Shown piece after piece: positions 11,807 to 62,170 of a stretch of DNA of 64,000 bases. Origin of the DNA: Magallana gigas. Taxonomy: Eukaryota. Below the pieces are notes generated by a model. It was not told the DNA's origin, ran no database searches, and was given only the letters and a program-made list of their open reading frames with translations. Within the stretch, counting starts at the first letter, position 1; the number at the start of each line of letters is the position of its first letter. The DNA lies in NCBI RefSeq assembly GCF_963853765.1, contig NC_088859.1, positions 29,946,001 through 30,010,000 of the forward strand. Reading direction: 5' to 3'. Position numbers and translations under genes: made by a program.

Positions 11807-13670
11807 CTATAACGACCATAACTTTGACCATGTTTCATTGGATGAGAAGTTCCTTAGAAAATTGTAAACCTGATTGACGTGCAAGTACATGTAGAGCTCA
11901 AATGAAAGATGCTGAAACCCGTCATCGTCGGGACTTGAATACAGAGGGAAATCTACAATATCTATTCCCTTGAGGACGGAAAAGTTTTCAATGCCACACA
12001 AAAGTCCTTTAACGCTTTTCCTCAACTGTTGGACATCACCACAGATGTTATCATAGCGGACGGTCTCGTTCTGACACCTTTTTTTGATCGCCAAATTCAG
12101 AAGAGCGTAACTTTTGAGGAGGGATGTGTGTAATTCCACAGTTAGGTTTTCTGCAGTAGTCTGGAATAAGATAAAAAGTTTGAATAAAGTGATGTCAATT
12201 GTTTCATTCACAGTTGAGTTTTTGACCTACTCTAGTTTCATCACATAGTTATATTAAATGTAAACTAGCTGTAAAAATGTTTCCAACAATTAGCGACTGA
12301 TATCATTTGCAAAAGCATTCATGCAATCATAAACTTGTAATTAGCTGGCATTACATGTAAAGGAACAGAAATTTTCGAGTCGGTTTATTTTCAATGTTAT
12401 TTTTAAAGACGACCCCTTTGTATTCCTTGAAAAAAGGGCTATGCTAATTTTGGAAAAGTTTAGAAATAGAACGAAATAATAAACCAATGCTACGCCAGTG
12501 TAACAATTATTATTAACAAACTATTTTTTTCTAAAAATTGAAACACAAAATGTTCTTTACTTACCTCATTTTCTAGCATGTTCTCTGAGGCATAACATGT
12601 AAAGTCTTCCTGTTTGAGTTTTTCAATTAAGCTGTCATTCCTTATCTGTTGAAATAAAATTGTTTGGTACATAATTACTGAATGTGACCGTGTGATTGCA
12701 CGTCATCATTTACAAAACTTTTATAAGCAATTGTTTTACTCTATTAAAAAGCAATTAAATAAATTACTAACGATTTCGGAGATTTTGGAGAGCAATTGGC
12801 TGGTGAAATGGACAGACTTTGCGAGAAATTCCTGGATCCTTTGAAGTATGTGTCTCACGTAGTCTTGGTCGTGTTCGGATGGTTTGTTATCGGGGCAGGG
12901 TTTTTTGAGCAATCCATAAATCTTGTTTCCGGTGATTACACCTGATCCCGCGGTGTAGATACGCAGAGGGCAGTCATTCGGATTACTTTCTGAATTATTT
13001 TGATTTTGAGACAGCCCAGGAGTTTCGGTGAAGTCGCTGCTCCTCCTTGTGGACGAATCTGACGTCATAGTAACAGCCGAATCTTGCATCATTTCGGCAC
13101 CTCTAGTCGATTCGAATGCTGTGGACCTCTTGACCCGGACATCGCTGGTAGATAGCAATTTGATGATCTTTGGAGCATTTTTCTTGACTTCTTCGTGTTG
13201 TCCTCTGAAGTTCTGCGATACCGTGTGTTTCGTAACTGGTGACGGCCTGCTACCATCGGCTCGGTTAGCGTTGTCGTCGCCATTGTTGATCGCTGGTACA
13301 ATTACGTCATCTATAAAGCTTTCGTGGGCTATCACATCCTCGGGTATTTGGGGCATTTCAACGGTCAGGTTTTCATTTGAGGTTGGAAATAATGCGAGTT
13401 TAAACCCCCAGCTGACAGAGTCTGTAAAGATAAGATTGATTTTATACTAGTATTATATAAACTGAACGCGTTACGAAATTATCTCATTTCCATTCTCAAA
13501 TATTTCTAGCAGATTACTTTATTATTTCTAGCAGATTACTTTATTTTTCTTCACTGCAGCAAATGAAAGGGTTTCACTAACATAACAGTTTAACGTTAAA
13601 TCTACAGGTGATACATACCATTCAAAAGACATAGAATTGTGAAAAATAATAAAACTGGTTGCATGTTCAT
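11807..13670 (-). CDS. Secreted 378-aa precursor; candidate long-chain class-I helical cytokine (IL-6/Unpaired-like)
   Basis: Exons 13670-13619, 13421-12772, 12645-12565 and 12160-11807 all have GT/AG sites, with intron phases 1,0,0 and an uninterrupted frame. The protein has a signal peptide (MNMQPVLLFFTILCLLNDSVSWG), an RVKR site, six Cys and four amphipathic segments. The gene model is well supported; the fold call is inference. Confidence 0.8.
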
Positions 13671-15703
13671 TTCTTCAGTGTTGAGTCTTATTAAAACTAA
13701 GTTCAAATATATCATGCTTTCGCTGATGTCGAATTTATATATGCAGAAAGAAAGAAAGAATTTTAGAAAGAAAAGTTTCAAATGTTAAATCAAAGTAACT
13801 AATGAATGAATTCTTAAGACGGCATTCAGAGTTGTAATAGAAAAAAGCGACCAATCAGATCCCTATCCTTTAGTTTCGATTTTATCGAAAAATCTTAGAC
13901 AATTTAATTACTTTCACTTTTAATGCTACGGAAACGATGTGTCAGCATCTGATGCTTCGTTCTATATTTAGATTTTTTAAATATACAATTTCTTGATCTG
14001 ATTATTTGTGTGTAAGTAGTAAAAATATATCATAGCTTCAACTGTGTATAATATTCACAGATTCTGAAGATTTTCCTTGAGAAAAAAATCATTAAACGAA
14101 TAGTTTAATAATGCTTTAGGTCAAATATTATTTTTCTTTCAAACTGGTATTGTTATTAAATTCTGTTGAGTGGAGTGTTTAGAATACCAGTACCAGTATA
14201 TGCCTACCAAACTGCACAATTATTTCAAATGTGTGTTTAATTTCATTTTATATATATTAATATGTTTAAATGATATCATTAATGCATATTCTTTCTTTCT
14301 TTTTTTCTTCCACTAATCGGCTCATGAAAAATCATTTGGACAACCTGTAAATATATTTTATCTAAATGGTTAGCCATCCAACTTTAATTCTTATTCACTT
14401 TTTTTTAATCCGAGTAGTCCAACTAAATATAAACTGACTAACCATATTCTTCGCTGGAATCATTCAATGAATGCTTCCGACTTCGAGTATTATAGGTCAG
14501 TGTGGACTAAGAGTGATCTTAATCGAATTTTTTAAAATGATTTGGCTCAAAGGTCTTTGATTAATTTCAAATAATAATATTTTCATATAGAGCTGTGAAT
14601 GCACTCTTTGTAGGTTTGTTTTACTTTAAGTACTTTTTAAAAATATATACATGTATTTGAAAAGTAAAAATCGGACATAGATTTTATATATGTATTAATT
14701 TCTAAATCAAAACTATGACGGACTTGCTCTAAGTTCTACCTAAAAAAAGTTTTGTTTATTTTGTTTTTGTTTTTTGTATTTTTTGTATATTTCATAAAAC
14801 AATCATAAGTTCTCAACGCATTTCTGGCCACTGCGTTATATAATCGGCCAAGGTTTGCCGAATTCACATTCGGCAAAACTCGACTGATTCAATCGCGTAC
14901 AAGTATATCGAAAAAAAAAAGAAGAGTTACGAATGGGCCGTGCTGTTTGGAATGCATAGTTAATCATTAAAAGCTGCTTGTATGACACTCAAGAATGTAA
15001 AGTGCTCGTTTCCGGTTGTCAGATACAACGCCGTCTATTTTCATTTTATATATATATTTGTTTTTTCGCGGAAAAAAACCCTCAAGTAAGTTCTACTGAT
15101 TTGGATTTTTGAAATCCATATCTAAGTGAATCTGTAAAATACGTTAATCCTAATCTGGTTCAACTGATATCTCATTACCAGTATTTTTTAACTTTATTTA
15201 TCTGACAGCTCACCTCAAAATAGTGAAGTTGTACATAATGCAAAAACAAAAGAAAACAAACATTAAATTAACAAACGAAGAACACAATACTTTAATACAT
15301 AAACATAAAACCACCCAACCAGTGAAACTAATTAATGAAACGTTCATATGATCTGATTGACTTGGTTGGGGAGACCGGAGGTGGGGGGGGGGGGGGGGGG
15401 TAAGTCACACGTACTTACCTATAGCAAATTCTTTCTATTTTTAGCATTCTACGGTCTACTGAATTACATATAGCTACGTACGTGTGTAATAATAAATCGA
15501 ATGAGATGCAACGTTTGTGCAGAATATATCGAATCTTATAATTTTCGATTATTCAATCAATTATGATATTTAATCATTGTCAATTAAAATCTATGGAAAT
15601 TCTTTTTGTTTAAGTTCTTAGTTTTACAGCAGAAGAAATCAAACAGAAAAATTTAAAACGAAAATAGAAACTACTAATCGTTTTCTTTCCGGTAGAGATT
15701 GCT

Positions 15704-22909: not shown

Positions 22910-23175
22910 ATGAACGAAGCGAACCCACAGAATCAAGATGCCAGGATTTCTCCGGAAGGAACCTCACTGCCCGGTGACGAGCGACATTTGCTGGCGTCTT
23001 CAAACATTAAAATGATCAGAAAGTACGTACCCGTCTTGACCAAATCGAAAGCGTCATGCGCCTCGAGAAGATTGCGATTCGTGTATCTTATATGTGGGTG
23101 CCTTTTGTTTGCAATATCTCTGGTATTGATGGTGGCCGGTACCATTAGAGTCAACCAATGCAACAGGGATGAAGA

Positions 23176-23231
<56 letters not shown>

Positions 23232-51700: not shown

Positions 51701-54572
51701 CATTCACTGTTATAAAAAAAATCTATTGACATTTCGTGGGAAGATACTTAAGAACTTGGCATTAACACAAAATTAATGTTATTTAATGCAACGAATGGGA
51801 TAAAGTTATATTACTTTACATGTATTTATCTCATGTTTTATGTGCAAAATCCAATTTCAAAGAGTACTTTTTTCATCTAAAATACAGTTTTACTAGAAAG
51901 TATTGTTTTAATGGGTTGTTTCACTGGTAAAACGACATAATGTGATATTAAAAAACATAGGTAATCAAAGATTACAGAGCTCAACGAGATGATTCATCAT
52001 ATTTATATCATGAAAATCAATCTATATTAAAATATTGTGTGTTATCCTACAATATTGTATCAAATCATATGATACAATATTATATCATACCACATTTAAA
52101 TTTCATAGTGCATTGTACGATACAAAATTTATAAATACACTACTATACTGAGTACAATACAATATTGTATCATATGATGCAACACAATACTGTATCATAT
52201 GATACAATGTTGTATGATATGATGATTTGTGTAAGTGATATTTTATTTTGTTATACTTTCATGTTAAATACTGAAATCTGATTGGTTAAGACGCAGTTAA
52301 TAATATTTACTATTACCCTCAGCGTTAGCAACGCACTTGGCAACGGGTAACATTAAAAAATGTTACATGCGCGAAAATTATGCGCGTACGGTTCGCTGTA
52401 GAATTCACGTTATTCCTATATAAAAGCAGTAAAATTTTCTTAAAATTTTTAAAAAAGATTTTAGCTATGTAAGTTTCTAGAGATCTATGAATCACAATTG
52501 GTTTTCTTAAGAAACAAAGGAAAATTACTCGGTAGATGTAAATAAAAATAAAGAAGATCGATCGATTGAAAATACATTACAATCATACAGTTTAAAAGGT
52601 AATTTTTGCTTAGCTTTTTGCAGCACAAAAAAATTTTCATTCATGCCTTCAAATTTTCTCAAAATCTTGCTGGTACAAAGGACTGTAAATACTGCAGAAT
52701 ATTCAAAGAGTATTTACATCCACTTTTTTCTGGTAAAAAAAAAACCTTAGTACTACTTAACTAATTTATGAACAATTCTGGATCTTAAAAGCATGTTCAA
52801 TAGCAACTTTAAGTGAAATTTGCCCGAAGATGAACAACAGGCCGAATCACCGACGGGTAAAATAAACCGCCTCCAAAAAGACATTTCTAACAAAAAGGTG
52901 TATTTTATTCTTAATTATTCATTTTTTTGTTCAAATACAAATATACTTACAATTCGTAAAATAGAAAGTTAATGTTTAACATTTAACTTTTGGAGTTAAA
53001 GTTTCTAAAACCTTTTCATCGAGAGCGTTCAAAAGTTTTTGCAACATTAAAAGCAACAGAAACGGACAACAGAATTATTTGACTTTTCATCTGTGTTACC
53101 TTTCGATTATTAATGAAGTATTTGTTAATAAAAAATGCTAACTTTATATGTGTTTATATGTGTTACTTAGGAGAGATTTATAGAGGGAGTAAAGATAAGA
53201 CGCTTTTCCGCGTGTTTTTTGTACATATACGGGCAATGAAGAAAGCGTGTAGTGTCAGACAAAATTCATATAATCCAATAAAGCGTGTACACCATCAAAT
53301 GATTTTATATAAATAGTGCCTGTTTGGGAGGGTAACAGTTGAAATTGACACCCCGAGGAAACCATTGTCAACCGACGCGAAGCGGAGGTTGACAATGGTT
53401 TTCGAGGGGTGTCAATTCAACTGTTATCCTCCCATACATGCACTATTTATTTTATTATACTGAATGTCTTGATTTTAGAGATTTTCTTACTGCTTCTATA
53501 TAGAAATGACGTGAATTCCACGGCATTATTTACGCGCATGTAACAATTCGTTGTGTTACCCGTTGCTAAGTGTGTTGCTAACGCTGAGGGTAATAGAACG
53601 GATTATCACCGGGGTCTTAACCAATCAGATTTCAGTATTTAACATGAAAGTATAATTAATACTAATATCATTATACTATTGTATTTTGGTTGAATACATT
53701 GTTAATCTTTGTACTTAAATCTAACGTATACGCAAATACTTGGATATAGTTGTATATGGTTAAAAATTATCCCAAATTAGCCTTTAAAAATGATTTTTAA
53801 TTAAATTGAAACAGAAATTTTTGCATTGTAAATTGACCTTCTTCTCTGATGGGTCAATATGAAATAAATGCATCCTTGAGACATTTCTGCTCGTCGGCGA
53901 TTAAGATTTTATCTCTGTTTTACAGAATATGATTATATAAGATATTTAAAGTAATATAATTATGTGGTTTTTCCAAACTTTCATTCGTTTTTTGCCATTT
54001 GTTTTTACGGATTACTTAAATGGCAAAAAAAATATCAGTCTTTTGTACCGGTCCATATAATAAATGTCTTAAAGGAGATGAATTATTTTTTTGACTTTGA
54101 TAATGCCATTGTCTGAATAAATTTTCGTAATAAAATATCAAAACTTCAATTAGTTTCAAACGAATAGCACATTTCATTATATACTAAAAACACAGAATCT
54201 AAGATATTTTACCGGGTTGATGGATATGGCTTCCTTAAGATAATACACTGTGCCGGTCGTGCTGGAGTCGTTAGCCAGGTCCTCAGGAAAATCCTCGTGA
54301 GTGGCATCGTTTAGAAGACACTGTCGGGTCTTGGACGCAAAGTTGAACGACTGACACCGCGCAGTTCTGTGGCACTCCATCGCACACTGAGTAGCCATGA
54401 ACTTTGTCGAGAAGTTGGAAATCTGGTGGTTCCGAAACTCATGTCCAACGAATGAAAGATTTGAGTTCACATTGAAAGCATAAATTCTGGAATCTCTCTG
54501 TATTTCTGTAATTTGACTAGAAACGCGCGTGAACAGCAGCAAAAATAAAAGAGTTCCCGATGCTGTCTTCAT
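36771..54572 (-). CDS. Large secreted multidomain protein: signal-PAN/apple-EGF-2xTSP1-SRCR-24xTSP1-Caspr/neurexin-IV-type fibrinogen-like domain (33 exons, ~1921 aa)
   Basis: Exons: 54572-54213 (signal, PAN), 51630-51492 (EGF), 51260-51093 and 50993-50826 (TSP1), 50658-50500 and 50183-50043 (SRCR), 49961-49791 (TSP1). Then 22 TSP1 exons of 165 nt starting at 48887, 48636, 48323, 48064, 47810, 47418, 46313, 46051, 45777, 45233, 44961, 44349, 44088, 43563, 43286, 42758, 42518, 42028, 41759, 41278, 40649 and 39889. Then 39331-39155 (TSP1), and 38930-38769, 38573-38148, 36835-36771 (YCDM...HD.E...C.CG...C.CD...W..D.G...IGALQC). The frame is continuous and no TM segment is seen. Confidence 0.9.
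44461..44620. mobile_element. Palindromic MITE-like hairpin element in a TSP1-gene intron
   Basis: Arms taagaaataaacagcaatttaaaaagttcgccgggatagtaagttggtt / aaccaacttcatatcccggagaactttttaacattgctgttaattactta surround a gtgatcaaat...atttgatcac core. Confidence 0.75.
46458..47035. mobile_element. Kolobok-like non-autonomous element in a TSP1-gene intron
   Basis: TIRs aggactaagtgcgg / ccgcacatagtcct. The TSD is degraded. Confidence 0.6.
52248..53655. mobile_element. Two oppositely oriented copies of the Crypton-like element (52248-52445 forward partial; 53303-53655 inverted full) in intron 1 of the TSP1 gene
   Basis: Same arm and hairpin sequences as 2583-3305 and 34531-34890. Confidence 0.8.
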
Positions 54573-59629: not shown

Positions 59630-62170
59630 AAAACCCGTATGAAAACAAAACAGTGTGTTACAAATATGTCGGCTGTTTCAACAACCTCCCTCCGTTTGAC
59701 AACGCTGCTTATGACTTGCCACGCTCGCCCGAGGAGATAGGGACAGAGTTTTTGCTGTTTACACGGAGGAATCCATCAAATCCAGACCGTCTGGATTATG
59801 TATCCCAATCCTCTGTCGTCAGCTCTCATTTCAAGAGCAGTGCCCAGACCAAGATCATTATCCATGGATTCGCTAACACAGTCAAAACCACATGGTTATA
59901 CAAAATGAAACGCGCGCTTTTAACAAAGGTAAAAAAAATGCTTTCTTTACTAGTATATTGCTATCTTCTATTTATTAAAAAATCCAGTATTTCGTTGCAT
60001 ATCAAAAATTTTCAATGACAACAACCATTCTTTGATATATGATTGTATCAACATAGTCTTTATAGGCATTTACCTTTCATAAGAAAATAATTACATTTTT
60101 CGGTGTCTTTGCCTGTGATAATACTCCGTATCGATTTTGTAATATACAGTCCAATAACTTCAAACGACGTATAATTGGGGCGCCAGCGGTGTTTGCCTAT
60201 ATTTAAACATTTACTCGTACAATGACTGAAAATTATATAAATATAAGTAATAAGGACTCATTCTTTGAATATTATGAGGTGATAATTTTGGTCGGGGCGT
60301 GACCAAATCTATCATAAATCCCTTTGGGCTTTAGGCGGCACGGGACAGGTTTTTTTTTGATACAATTCATTGTAGCGTGTCTTCGGAACTCTGTAACTAG
60401 AATTTCATCAGTTCCCATTCAGCACAAATACCTTTAATTCACTCTTTATAAGACCAATCATCAATATCTGAAGAAAATTACTAGTCAAAACCTGTAAAAT
60501 TTACTATTTACTACATACTTGTTTTTATGAGATTTTGACCCTTTCATATTTTGCCAATATTTCATTATTTTTTCAGCTTTTTAGACCCCCCCCCCCCAGC
60601 TAATTCCCTGCAAAGGGTTGACCTTCCGTACCGCGTGCATGTTGCACCATCACATGTCAGAAACTTAGCGGTGTATAGTTTACAATGTCCCATCCACCTA
60701 CTTTTCGTGTTATTTTACCTCCCGTCTGTAACTTGCAATTTCACTGTGTAAAGTCAACACAACAGTCATAGCCGCAGGTTTCGCATTTTACTTCTGATTC
60801 TCATGTACCTAACATATGGGGCCTACATATTGCATATCAATTTCAACAAGAGACACCCCTCTAACTAATGATAATAATTAAAAATCATTTCATGAATTTT
60901 AGCAACACGCATAAGCCTTCAAGTACAGCAACTCTCAATTTTACAAAAATATTGACCAGGTACTTTATCCGAAACTGTCCCTTGCTACCTTATGATACTA
61001 GATTTGATCATTCGGGCTTTATAATAGATTTGATACCTTATCTGACAGCTTGTTTTGATGAGCAAACTAGAAAGTAACATTCCACAGAAAGTGCAAGCTT
61101 TTGTTAAAACGCTTCTATCTCCTCATAATACTCAAAGAATCATTCCTTATTCCTTAAATATTACACACAGTATTTTGTATACTATTATCAAATTGTTCAG
61201 GACGTAATCGCATGAAACAGACATTTTGATTACTTTATCAGAGTAAATTTTAAGTAATTCTTATGACGGCCAACTTAGGCCTTTATTGCGCAATATTCAG
61301 TGCAGCAGAGTGTTTTCTCTACATTGGATTTTTAAATATCGAACTATACACATATCAATTTTCCTTAATACTTATTATACGAAACCTTAATCTACTTTTA
61401 AATCTTTTTAGTACTCCAAAAAAAAATATCAGTGTATTTTTATATTTTGAGATGCTCCCTTTTGAAAACTTATAGTAAAATTATTGCACATAATATCATA
61501 AGTTAAATCATTGCACATAATATAAATACTGTTTCCCAATCCAAGCAAAATGTTTATCGCTGCATTTTTACAATTTGTGTACGTGCCTAAAATGTGATTA
61601 TTTAGTATATAATTCTTAATTAAATGAACCTGTATTTTAAGAGTTCTCTAGGACTATCTAGATAAGGGATTATTGCTGAAACTTTGCAGTTACATAATAT
61701 CGGTGCAATATACATATGATATGAAAATAAAGAGTTTTTGTTGTAGTTGTTACACAAAAAAACCAAAGTCGGTCCCTTAACTACGTTTCACTAAACATAA
61801 TCTAAATATGGGATGAAACAAGCCTTAATTTAATAGTTAATTAACAGCGACCGTGTCGCATCATTCCATTCCTTTTTTGTGCATGAAGCCGATCTTCAAA
61901 ATTAAACATTTGATATGCGTAAGGTATTTCATTGACAGGGAGACTACAACGTAATCGTCGTGGCGTGGGGGGCGGAAGCCGCGGCCCCCGACTACAACCA
62001 GGCCGTCTCCAACACCAGAATGGTGGCCACCCAGACCCGGCTCATCATCGAGGGGCTGGTCCAGGCCGGGGGGAGGCTCGCTGACATCCACCTCATAGGT
62101 CACAGCCTGGGGGCCCACACCGCGGGATCCACGGGCAGACAAGTGGGCGGCAAAATTGGACGAATCACGG
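59630..62170 (+). CDS. Second pancreatic-lipase-like gene, partial (2 exons seen; continues beyond the window)
   Basis: Exon 59630-59928 (TVCYKYVGCF...FLLFTR...IIIHGF...) and exon 61939-62170 (GDYNVIVVAW...GHSLGAHTAG...IGRITG) have canonical sites and are in frame. The signal-peptide exon was not identified. Confidence 0.9.
60248..61152. mobile_element. Hairpin MITE whose two arms are separated by intervening sequence
   Basis: Left arm aataaggactcattctttgaatattatgagg...gaccaaatctatcat (60248-60320); right-arm pieces gggctttataatagatttgat (~61015-61035) and cctcataatactcaaagaatcattccttatt (~61120-61152). A related remnant lies at ~28790-28890. Confidence 0.55.

Follow-up and report, generated by a model that had tools for sequence, protein, structure and literature searches.

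Molluscs have JAK, STAT, SOCS and an IL6R-like receptor, but in any invertebrate, insect Unpaired excepted, sequence comparison has revealed no ligand of the IL-6 type. We analyzed a locus that raises the question of whether oysters encode such a ligand. It lies in a stretch of 64,000 nucleotides from Magallana gigas (NCBI RefSeq assembly GCF_963853765.1, contig NC_088859.1, positions 29,946,001 to 30,010,000 of the forward strand), hereafter the window, whose minus strand carries four exons between positions 13670 and 11807. An earlier note on this DNA had read these exons as a hidden gene for a secreted protein and a candidate long-chain helical cytokine of the IL-6/Unpaired kind. We propose, with slightly less than even confidence, that this is a fast-evolving oyster gene for a pre-pro-protein with a cytokine-type four-helix bundle, which would be secreted as the ligand of a class-I-type receptor. 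The two parts of this proposal differ in strength: the bundle itself is probable on the predicted structure, and the role of an extracellular signalling ligand of a class-I receptor is put forward more hesitantly.

The four-exon gene and its putative precursor protein

Reading the sequence, we joined the four exons into 1137 nt (378 codons), with GT-AG introns in phases 1, 0 and 0. The coding part of exon 1 (13670-13619, 52 nt) provides the signal peptide, 17 codons and 1 nt, and ends in phase 1 at the donor G/GTATGT (the slash marks the exon boundary). Exon 2 (13421-12772, 650 nt, CAG/AC...ATC/GTTAGT) carries the pro-region, an RVKR site, a Ser/Thr/Asn-rich linker, a Cys loop and helix A. It is followed by the short exon 3 (12645-12565, 81 nt, CAG/ATA...GAG/GTAAGT), which has a phase-0 intron on either side and supplies the loop between helices A and B (AB loop) with the conserved Cys251. 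The coding part of exon 4 (12160-11807, 354 nt including the stop, acceptor CAG/ACT) encodes helices B, C and D and, in the loop between helices C and D (CD loop), a DFPLY motif. The four-exon, 378-residue model with phases 1, 0 and 0 given in the earlier note was thus borne out at all the junctions read in the sequence. RNA from a congener agrees with this plan downstream of exon 1: the open reading frame (ORF) P0033 (389 residues; RNA contigs L006 and L007, from SRR8427116 and SRR8427115) and the ORF P0044 (195 residues; RNA contig L008, from SRR8427121) are spliced at the 2/3 and 3/4 junctions exactly as predicted. In addition, genomic contigs of two further Magallana/Crassostrea taxa show conserved splice sites, and the acceptor and donor of exon 2 are kept in contigs L002 and L003.

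At the 5' side, a TATATAA box on the minus strand (13735..13741) stands 71 nt upstream of the conserved ATG and marks the proximal promoter. The 378-residue product corresponds to residues 16-393 of the RefSeq protein XP_034312529.2 (393 residues, "uncharacterized protein [Magallana gigas]"), and the Crassostrea angulata counterpart is XP_052689785.1 (378 residues, "uncharacterized protein LOC128167879"). Since RefSeq models exist in both M. gigas and C. angulata, the gene cannot be called hidden, as it had been; it is merely uncharacterised. The RefSeq start in M. gigas is an upstream in-frame ATG (13713..13715, minus strand) that adds 15 residues and lies about 27 nt 3' of the TATA box. Because this ATG is missing in the sister species, through a 3-nt deletion, and is unused by the C. 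angulata model XP_052689785.1, it is probably not the true start, and XP_034312529.2 is probably over-extended at its N-terminus. At the other end, the sister-species transcripts L006 and L007 align down to position 10907, which gives by homology a minimum 3' untranslated region of 10907..11806 (minus strand) with AATAAA signals at 11333 and 11326. The window from 1807 to 23715 is 100% identical to chromosome OY970751.1 of GCA_963853765.1, and no paralogue was found within the 64-kb window. Within intron 1 (~13507-13549), a unit of about 22 nt is tandemly duplicated in M. gigas (in the window and in contig L001) and present in a single copy in the sister species.

The encoded protein has the marks of the secretory pathway that the earlier note had listed, all seen in the sequence: a hydrophobic, signal-like N-terminus, an RVKR site and N-glycosylation sequons, of which we counted ten (NxS/T) in the 378 residues. 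RVKR, a furin-type R-x-K-R at residues 113-116 (13126..13137, minus strand), is invariant in Magallana species, and the equivalent region of Saccostrea reads RRVIR/S. Downstream of the linker, Cys168 and Cys193 delimit a loop (12895..12972, minus strand) with RIY and KIYGL motifs, for which a beta-hairpin is predicted at low predicted local distance difference test (pLDDT) values. Both Cys of this loop and the IYGL motif are kept in Saccostrea; Ostrea has two Cys in the equivalent stretch and no IYGL. Six Cys follow the signal (168, 193, 251, 290, 301 and 316), with one more inside it, so that the number claimed previously stood. The C..C pair thought to close the link between helices B and C did not hold as a general feature: C290 and C301 are confined to M. 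gigas and C. angulata; the sister species has Tyr and Ser at these positions, and the pair is missing in Saccostrea and Ostrea. As read across these taxa, both Cys were gained together and recently in gigas and angulata, which suggests a newly acquired disulfide.

The linker also differs between alleles. Between residues 156 and 157 (~13003-13005), the reference allele is without a 147-nt segment encoding 49 Ser/Thr/Asn-rich residues with several NxS/T sequons. This segment occurs in both sister taxa and also in P0006 and P0022, which represent either nearly identical alleles or close relatives. The linker is therefore polymorphic in length, and the allele in the window is probably a deletion allele.

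Predicted fold and structural neighbours

We modelled residues 157-378 (P0048:172-393) with AlphaFold2, using an alignment of nine sequences from about five taxa. The model reached a pLDDT of 67.0 and a predicted template modelling score (pTM) of 0.70, with helices mostly at 75-87. Four long helices were predicted: A at residues 203-235 (domain positions 47-79), B at 264-290 (108-134), C at 295-324 (139-168) and D at 348-366 (192-210). A short helix at residues 238-246 lies in the AB link, and another one at 369-377 ends the chain; short strands were placed at LRIY and NKIYGL in the Cys loop and at PLYSSP in the CD loop. The links between the long helices follow a long-short-long pattern of 28 (AB), 4 (BC) and 23 (CD) residues, and the helices fall at the positions claimed in the earlier note. 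Helices A, C and D furthermore showed a significant hydrophobic periodicity of about 100 degrees across taxa. AlphaFold2, Foldseek and this amphipathic periodicity all support a predicted four-helix-bundle domain at residues 203-378, encoded on the minus strand at 11810..12867 including introns 2 and 3.

We then compared the model with 350,542 PDB chains using Foldseek. Long-chain class-I cytokines made up 47 of the 50 best hits, and for IL-11, CNTF, G-CSF, prolactin and LIF the target-normalised template modelling (TM) scores were 0.66-0.75 with probabilities of 0.98-1.00. The lowest E-value belonged to IL-27p28 (0.037), with a target-normalised TM-score of 0.23 against a fused chain of 370 residues and of 0.41-0.63 against other IL-27 entries. 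It was followed by IL-11 (E 0.10, TM-score 0.68-0.73), CNTF (E from 0.11, TM-score 0.67-0.75), prolactin (E 0.23-1.4, TM-score up to 0.71) and LIF (E 0.36, TM-score 0.66). G-CSF, IL-6, OSM and growth hormone were likewise among the matches. The Foldseek viral library gave nothing comparable except one gammaherpesvirus protein. At the level of prediction, the domain is thus an up-up-down-down bundle with long AB and CD links and a short BC link, as the earlier note had foreseen, and its neighbours lie among the long-chain class-I cytokines; the structural outcome that the note had named as refuting its reading did not arise.

Sequence and profile searches gave a different picture. When the exon pieces and four full-length homologues were compared with Pfam by hmmscan (E<=10), no cytokine family was detected, only sub-threshold noise such as NosD and DUFs. 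Neither a single-sequence phmmer search of PDB with the exon-4 piece nor a profile search with the family alignment detected a cytokine; calbindin and septin noise was all that appeared. Homology to IL-6 or Unpaired, with which the earlier note had compared the protein, was not shown by these empty Pfam and PDB searches or by Foldseek E-values that were all at least 0.037. The fold of the candidate is cytokine-like; membership in the IL-6-type family is not demonstrable, because no similarity in sequence was found.

A fast-evolving oyster family

We searched 1.84 billion representative proteins with a HMMER profile built from exon 4. The profile matched oyster proteins only, one spurious repeat protein aside, with E-values from 5.6e-14 to 2.3e-5. 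The matches include XP_062577356.1 of Saccostrea cucullata (499 residues), XP_061193636.1 of S. echinata and XP_048737200.1 of Ostrea edulis (171 residues), the last two with N-terminally truncated annotations, as well as the ENA ORF P0080. The spurious protein, P0081 (2061 residues, 8 matched stretches), is an unrelated repeat protein of an ENA assembly that matches one helix-like segment, and was set aside. The S. cucullata protein is laid out in the same way: its signal peptide is followed by an INNGD motif, RRVIR/S and a stretch rich in Ser, Thr and Asn, then by a Cys loop that contains RIYGL and finally by the helical domain. The four-exon plan with phases 1, 0 and 0 recurs in the S. cucullata gene, the signal exon being followed by the phase-1 intron, and the O. 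edulis gene retains both phase-0 introns. Across genera, four Cys (168, 193, 251 and 316) and the motifs TAEN, YALLD, KG..DFP.Y and N(Q/R)(I/V)..(F/Y)L are conserved. By its HMMER similarity and its common exon plan, Cys and motifs, the M. gigas gene belongs to an ostreid LOC128167879-like family. Synteny with Saccostrea and Ostrea was not evident within +/-10 kb.

On the 5' side of the annotated ATG of O. edulis XP_048737200.1, the reading frame runs on without a stop for 186 codons (L016 9443-10000, OX387708.1). Because this upstream frame encodes a Ser/Thr-rich region and a Cys loop, the O. edulis RefSeq model is judged to be N-terminally truncated.

We also analyzed how the gene evolves. 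The pooled proportion of nonsynonymous differences (pN) was 0.124 against 0.248 for synonymous ones (pS; Fisher p = 1e-5), the pairwise ratio of nonsynonymous to synonymous rates (dN/dS) was 0.45-0.56 in exons 2 and 4, and the indels, of 147 nt and 3 nt, are all in frame. From these comparisons, the gene is evolving fast under purifying selection. Conservation is unevenly spread: helix B is the best conserved across genera, at 44%, and helix C (residues 295-324, ~12059-11970) changes fastest, with 50% identity to the sister species, where the other segments reach 70-93%, and 9% to Saccostrea. The receptor-contact surfaces of cytokines typically evolve rapidly, and a fast helix C would suit such a surface, which is only suggestive.

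Transcripts and alternative readings

The reading that we favour can be laid out as a sequence of steps. Transcription from the proximal TATA promoter would give an mRNA for a pre-pro-protein that enters the endoplasmic reticulum by means of the exon-1 signal peptide. A furin-type convertase would cut after RVKR116, at the end of a pro-region of about 95 residues. This would leave a variable Ser/Thr/Asn-rich linker, probably glycosylated as the domain may also be, a disulfide-closed Cys loop (with 168-193 and 251-316 as putative pairs) and a C-terminal domain of about 175 residues folded as an up-up-down-down bundle of the long-chain class-I cytokine type. The mature protein would be secreted and act as an extracellular signalling ligand, for which the most likely receptor would be a cytokine-receptor-homology protein (IL6R/Domeless-like) driving JAK/STAT. 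In its most far-reaching form, the proposal would make this protein the first molluscan (lophotrochozoan) long-chain class-I cytokine, furin-released from a larger precursor, equipped with an extra disulfide-loop/beta element and acting through an orphan IL6R/Domeless-like receptor-JAK-STAT pathway, whether by common ancestry with IL-6/Unpaired or by independent origin. We consider that extended version rather unlikely.

Several observations weigh against the secreted ligand. The structural model was built on a shallow alignment (nine sequences), and three of the five AlphaFold2 models scored about 66 while two failed at a pLDDT of about 39. No PDB match was found by Foldseek at E <= 0.001, the best value being 0.037. 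Four helices linked in a long-short-long manner nearly dictate the topology, which means that the fold match cannot count as evidence separate from the initial observation. A model of exon 4 alone (pLDDT 63) matches ferritins non-specifically; the cytokine specificity therefore depends on all four helices in their full arrangement. Neither in sequence nor in profile does the protein resemble any cytokine family. Homologues were recovered from Ostreidae alone (Magallana, Saccostrea and Ostrea), whereas the presumed receptor is distributed more widely. Finally, no ORF from a spliced M. gigas transcript was recovered by homology searches or by an exact look-up of the 378-residue ORF, and the sole spliced transcripts found, those of the sister species, start in a distal 5' exon and code for a product without a signal peptide. 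Such distal-exon, signal-less transcripts are an unexplained complication for a secreted ligand.

The strongest competing explanation, which we regard as a serious possibility although still doubtful, is that the protein is a secreted helical glycoprotein peculiar to this lineage, whose role is not that of a cytokine: it might be part of mucus or of the extracellular matrix, act as a gamete or larval cue, or serve as a carrier. In that case its likeness to cytokines would have arisen by convergence, or would follow from the loop lengths in an AlphaFold model of low depth. An oyster-only family, the absence of sequence similarity to cytokine families and Foldseek E-values that never fall below 0.037 all fit such a protein. 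So do the long Ser/Thr/Asn-rich linker with its 49-residue length polymorphism and the extra predicted beta structure (the Cys-loop hairpin and the CD-loop strand), which is foreign to the long-chain cytokines of vertebrates. However, a helical glycoprotein of another kind does not readily account for structural neighbours that are class-I long-chain cytokines in 47 of 50 cases, and not ferritins, apolipoproteins or other bundles. Nor does it readily account for rapid change concentrated in helix C, a pattern that is generally known from the receptor-contact surfaces of cytokines.

The invariant RVKR site leads to a further explanation, that of a prohormone from which small active peptides are cut at RVKR and other basic sites, for example the 40 residues after RVKR, with the helical domain serving as carrier or chaperone. 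The segment after RVKR is indeed the best conserved among Magallana species (93% identity), but it falls to only 30% in Saccostrea, the RR at residues 143-144 is not conserved, and every motif that the genera share falls within the Cys loop or the helical domain. We consider a prohormone improbable.

The distal 5' exon raises the question of whether the main product is intracellular. This exon lies on the minus strand at 23031..23141, 9.6 kb upstream, and ends at the donor CGG/GTACGT; bases 1-111 of L006 and L007 match it at 92% identity. Sister-species RNA joins it to the usual acceptor of exon 2 and skips the signal-peptide exon. In the sister species it is non-coding, with an in-frame stop and an out-of-frame upstream ATG, and the ORF starts from the Met41 equivalent without a signal peptide. 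Both full-length sister-species RNA contigs (L006 and L007) are built in this way, and the GT donor of the distal exon is present in the M. gigas window. The spliced transcripts that the earlier note had called for thus exist in sister-species RNA for junctions 2/3 and 3/4; the exon 1/2 junction was not seen, the RNA using the distal exon in its place. However, L009 and L010, which are genomic contigs of the sister species, retain the whole proximal start, from the TATA box and the ATG through the hydrophobic core to the exon-1 donor, and a phase-1 signal exon recurs in Saccostrea. For these reasons, we doubt that the distal-exon form is the main coding form, and we take the proximal exon 1 and the distal exon to represent alternative promoters. 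In addition, the conserved Cys pairs, the furin site and the ten sequons would make sense only in the secretory pathway, and the distal-exon mRNA has its out-of-frame ATG upstream of the coding frame. An intracellular main product appears as improbable as the prohormone, or marginally more so.

The remaining explanation, a non-functional locus (a chance ORF or a decaying pseudogene), might draw on a fairly high dN/dS (about 0.5) and on intron flanks that are conserved as much as exon 3, but is effectively refuted by a 378-codon frame open over four exons, in-frame indels throughout, a pN below pS (p = 1e-5), the existence of spliced RNA and an exon plan kept in three genera. Overall, a secreted precursor with a cytokine-type bundle is the reading that we retain, at the strength given at the outset.

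Some observations concern the surroundings of the gene. The distal exon, just downstream of a (CT)n microsatellite, is antisense to exon 1 of an F5/8-type-C gene that runs on the plus strand and has its ATG at 22910. This (CT)n/(GA)n tract (window 23160-23235) encodes RERERE... in the plus-strand ORF 22910-23284, and the sister-species RNA contigs end there. Elsewhere in the window, an element of about 620 bp (2686-3305) aligns with its own reverse complement at 85%, and related copies lie at 34526-34890, 52242-52437 and 53300-53666; it looks like a foldback or a dispersed repeat similar to a miniature inverted-repeat transposable element (MITE). Exons of neighbouring genes with Pfam profilin, lipase (twice), TSP1 and PAN matches were observed at 5501-5905 (minus strand), 32680-33093 (plus), 45645-46070 (minus), 54177-54572 (minus) and 59653-60018 (plus), and none of them is related to cytokine signalling.

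Comparison with known systems

The closest relatives of the M. gigas protein are the oyster proteins annotated as uncharacterized (XP_052689785.1, XP_062577356.1, XP_061193636.1 and XP_048737200.1). They are true homologues, none of them with a described function, and no publication was found on the family accessions or on the SRA runs. Our search of the literature likewise found no described molluscan class-I helical cytokine. A 2026 survey reports IL6R-like, JAK and STAT proteins together in Mollusca and detected no IL-6-type ligand in invertebrates (PMC13203501). The present locus supplies a concrete candidate for such a ligand. Its gene model and domain boundaries are defined, a putative processing site is located and farmed oyster species carry orthologues, which makes the candidate directly testable, and the question bears on the age of helical-cytokine signalling. 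If its function proves to be different, it would still offer a clean example of a taxon-restricted, fast-evolving secreted protein whose sole functional clue comes from predicted structure.

Another candidate helical-cytokine-like ligand is known from oysters. CgIFNLP is a protein of about 15 kDa described as class-II-like, with reported binding to CgIFNR-3 and engagement of a JAK/STAT reporter (PMC8218723, PMC9756803). It is the product of a different gene and of a different size class, whereas the present protein has 378 residues and its structural neighbours are class-I long-chain cytokines.

With the gp130/IL-6-type cytokines (IL-6, IL-11, IL-27p28, CNTF, LIF and OSM, and their relatives G-CSF, prolactin and growth hormone), the oyster protein shares an arrangement, predicted in its case, of four long helices in which the AB and CD links are long and the BC link is short, and these cytokines are its best PDB neighbours. 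It also resembles them in its putative signal peptide, N-glycosylation sequons and fast evolution and, apparently, in an intron at the end of the signal-peptide region. LIF and CNTF have helices B to D in one last exon, like the oyster gene. In contrast, there is no sequence or profile similarity between the two groups, and the oyster protein is about twice as long, with an N-terminal extension of about 200 residues (pro-region, furin site and linker). It has moreover an extra putative disulfide loop, predicted to pair with the CD-loop strand. The Cys pattern of IL-6 and G-CSF differs from the oyster pattern, in which the AB loop would be joined to helix C. The helical domain is interrupted by two introns in the oyster gene, both in phase 0, compared to three in IL-6 genes (bioRxiv 10.64898/2026.04.02.716188).

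The Drosophila Unpaired proteins Upd1-3 are secreted, glycosylated proteins of about 400 residues, regarded as IL-6-like helical ligands of the gp130-like receptor Domeless (PMC6996930, PMC12419797). No similarity between them and the oyster protein was detected, the Pfam scan having given no match of any kind and no search having been aimed at Upd sequences. By description, the oyster protein is like Unpaired in its size, its probable glycosylation, its restriction to one lineage and its being unrecognisable by sequence outside its own clade.

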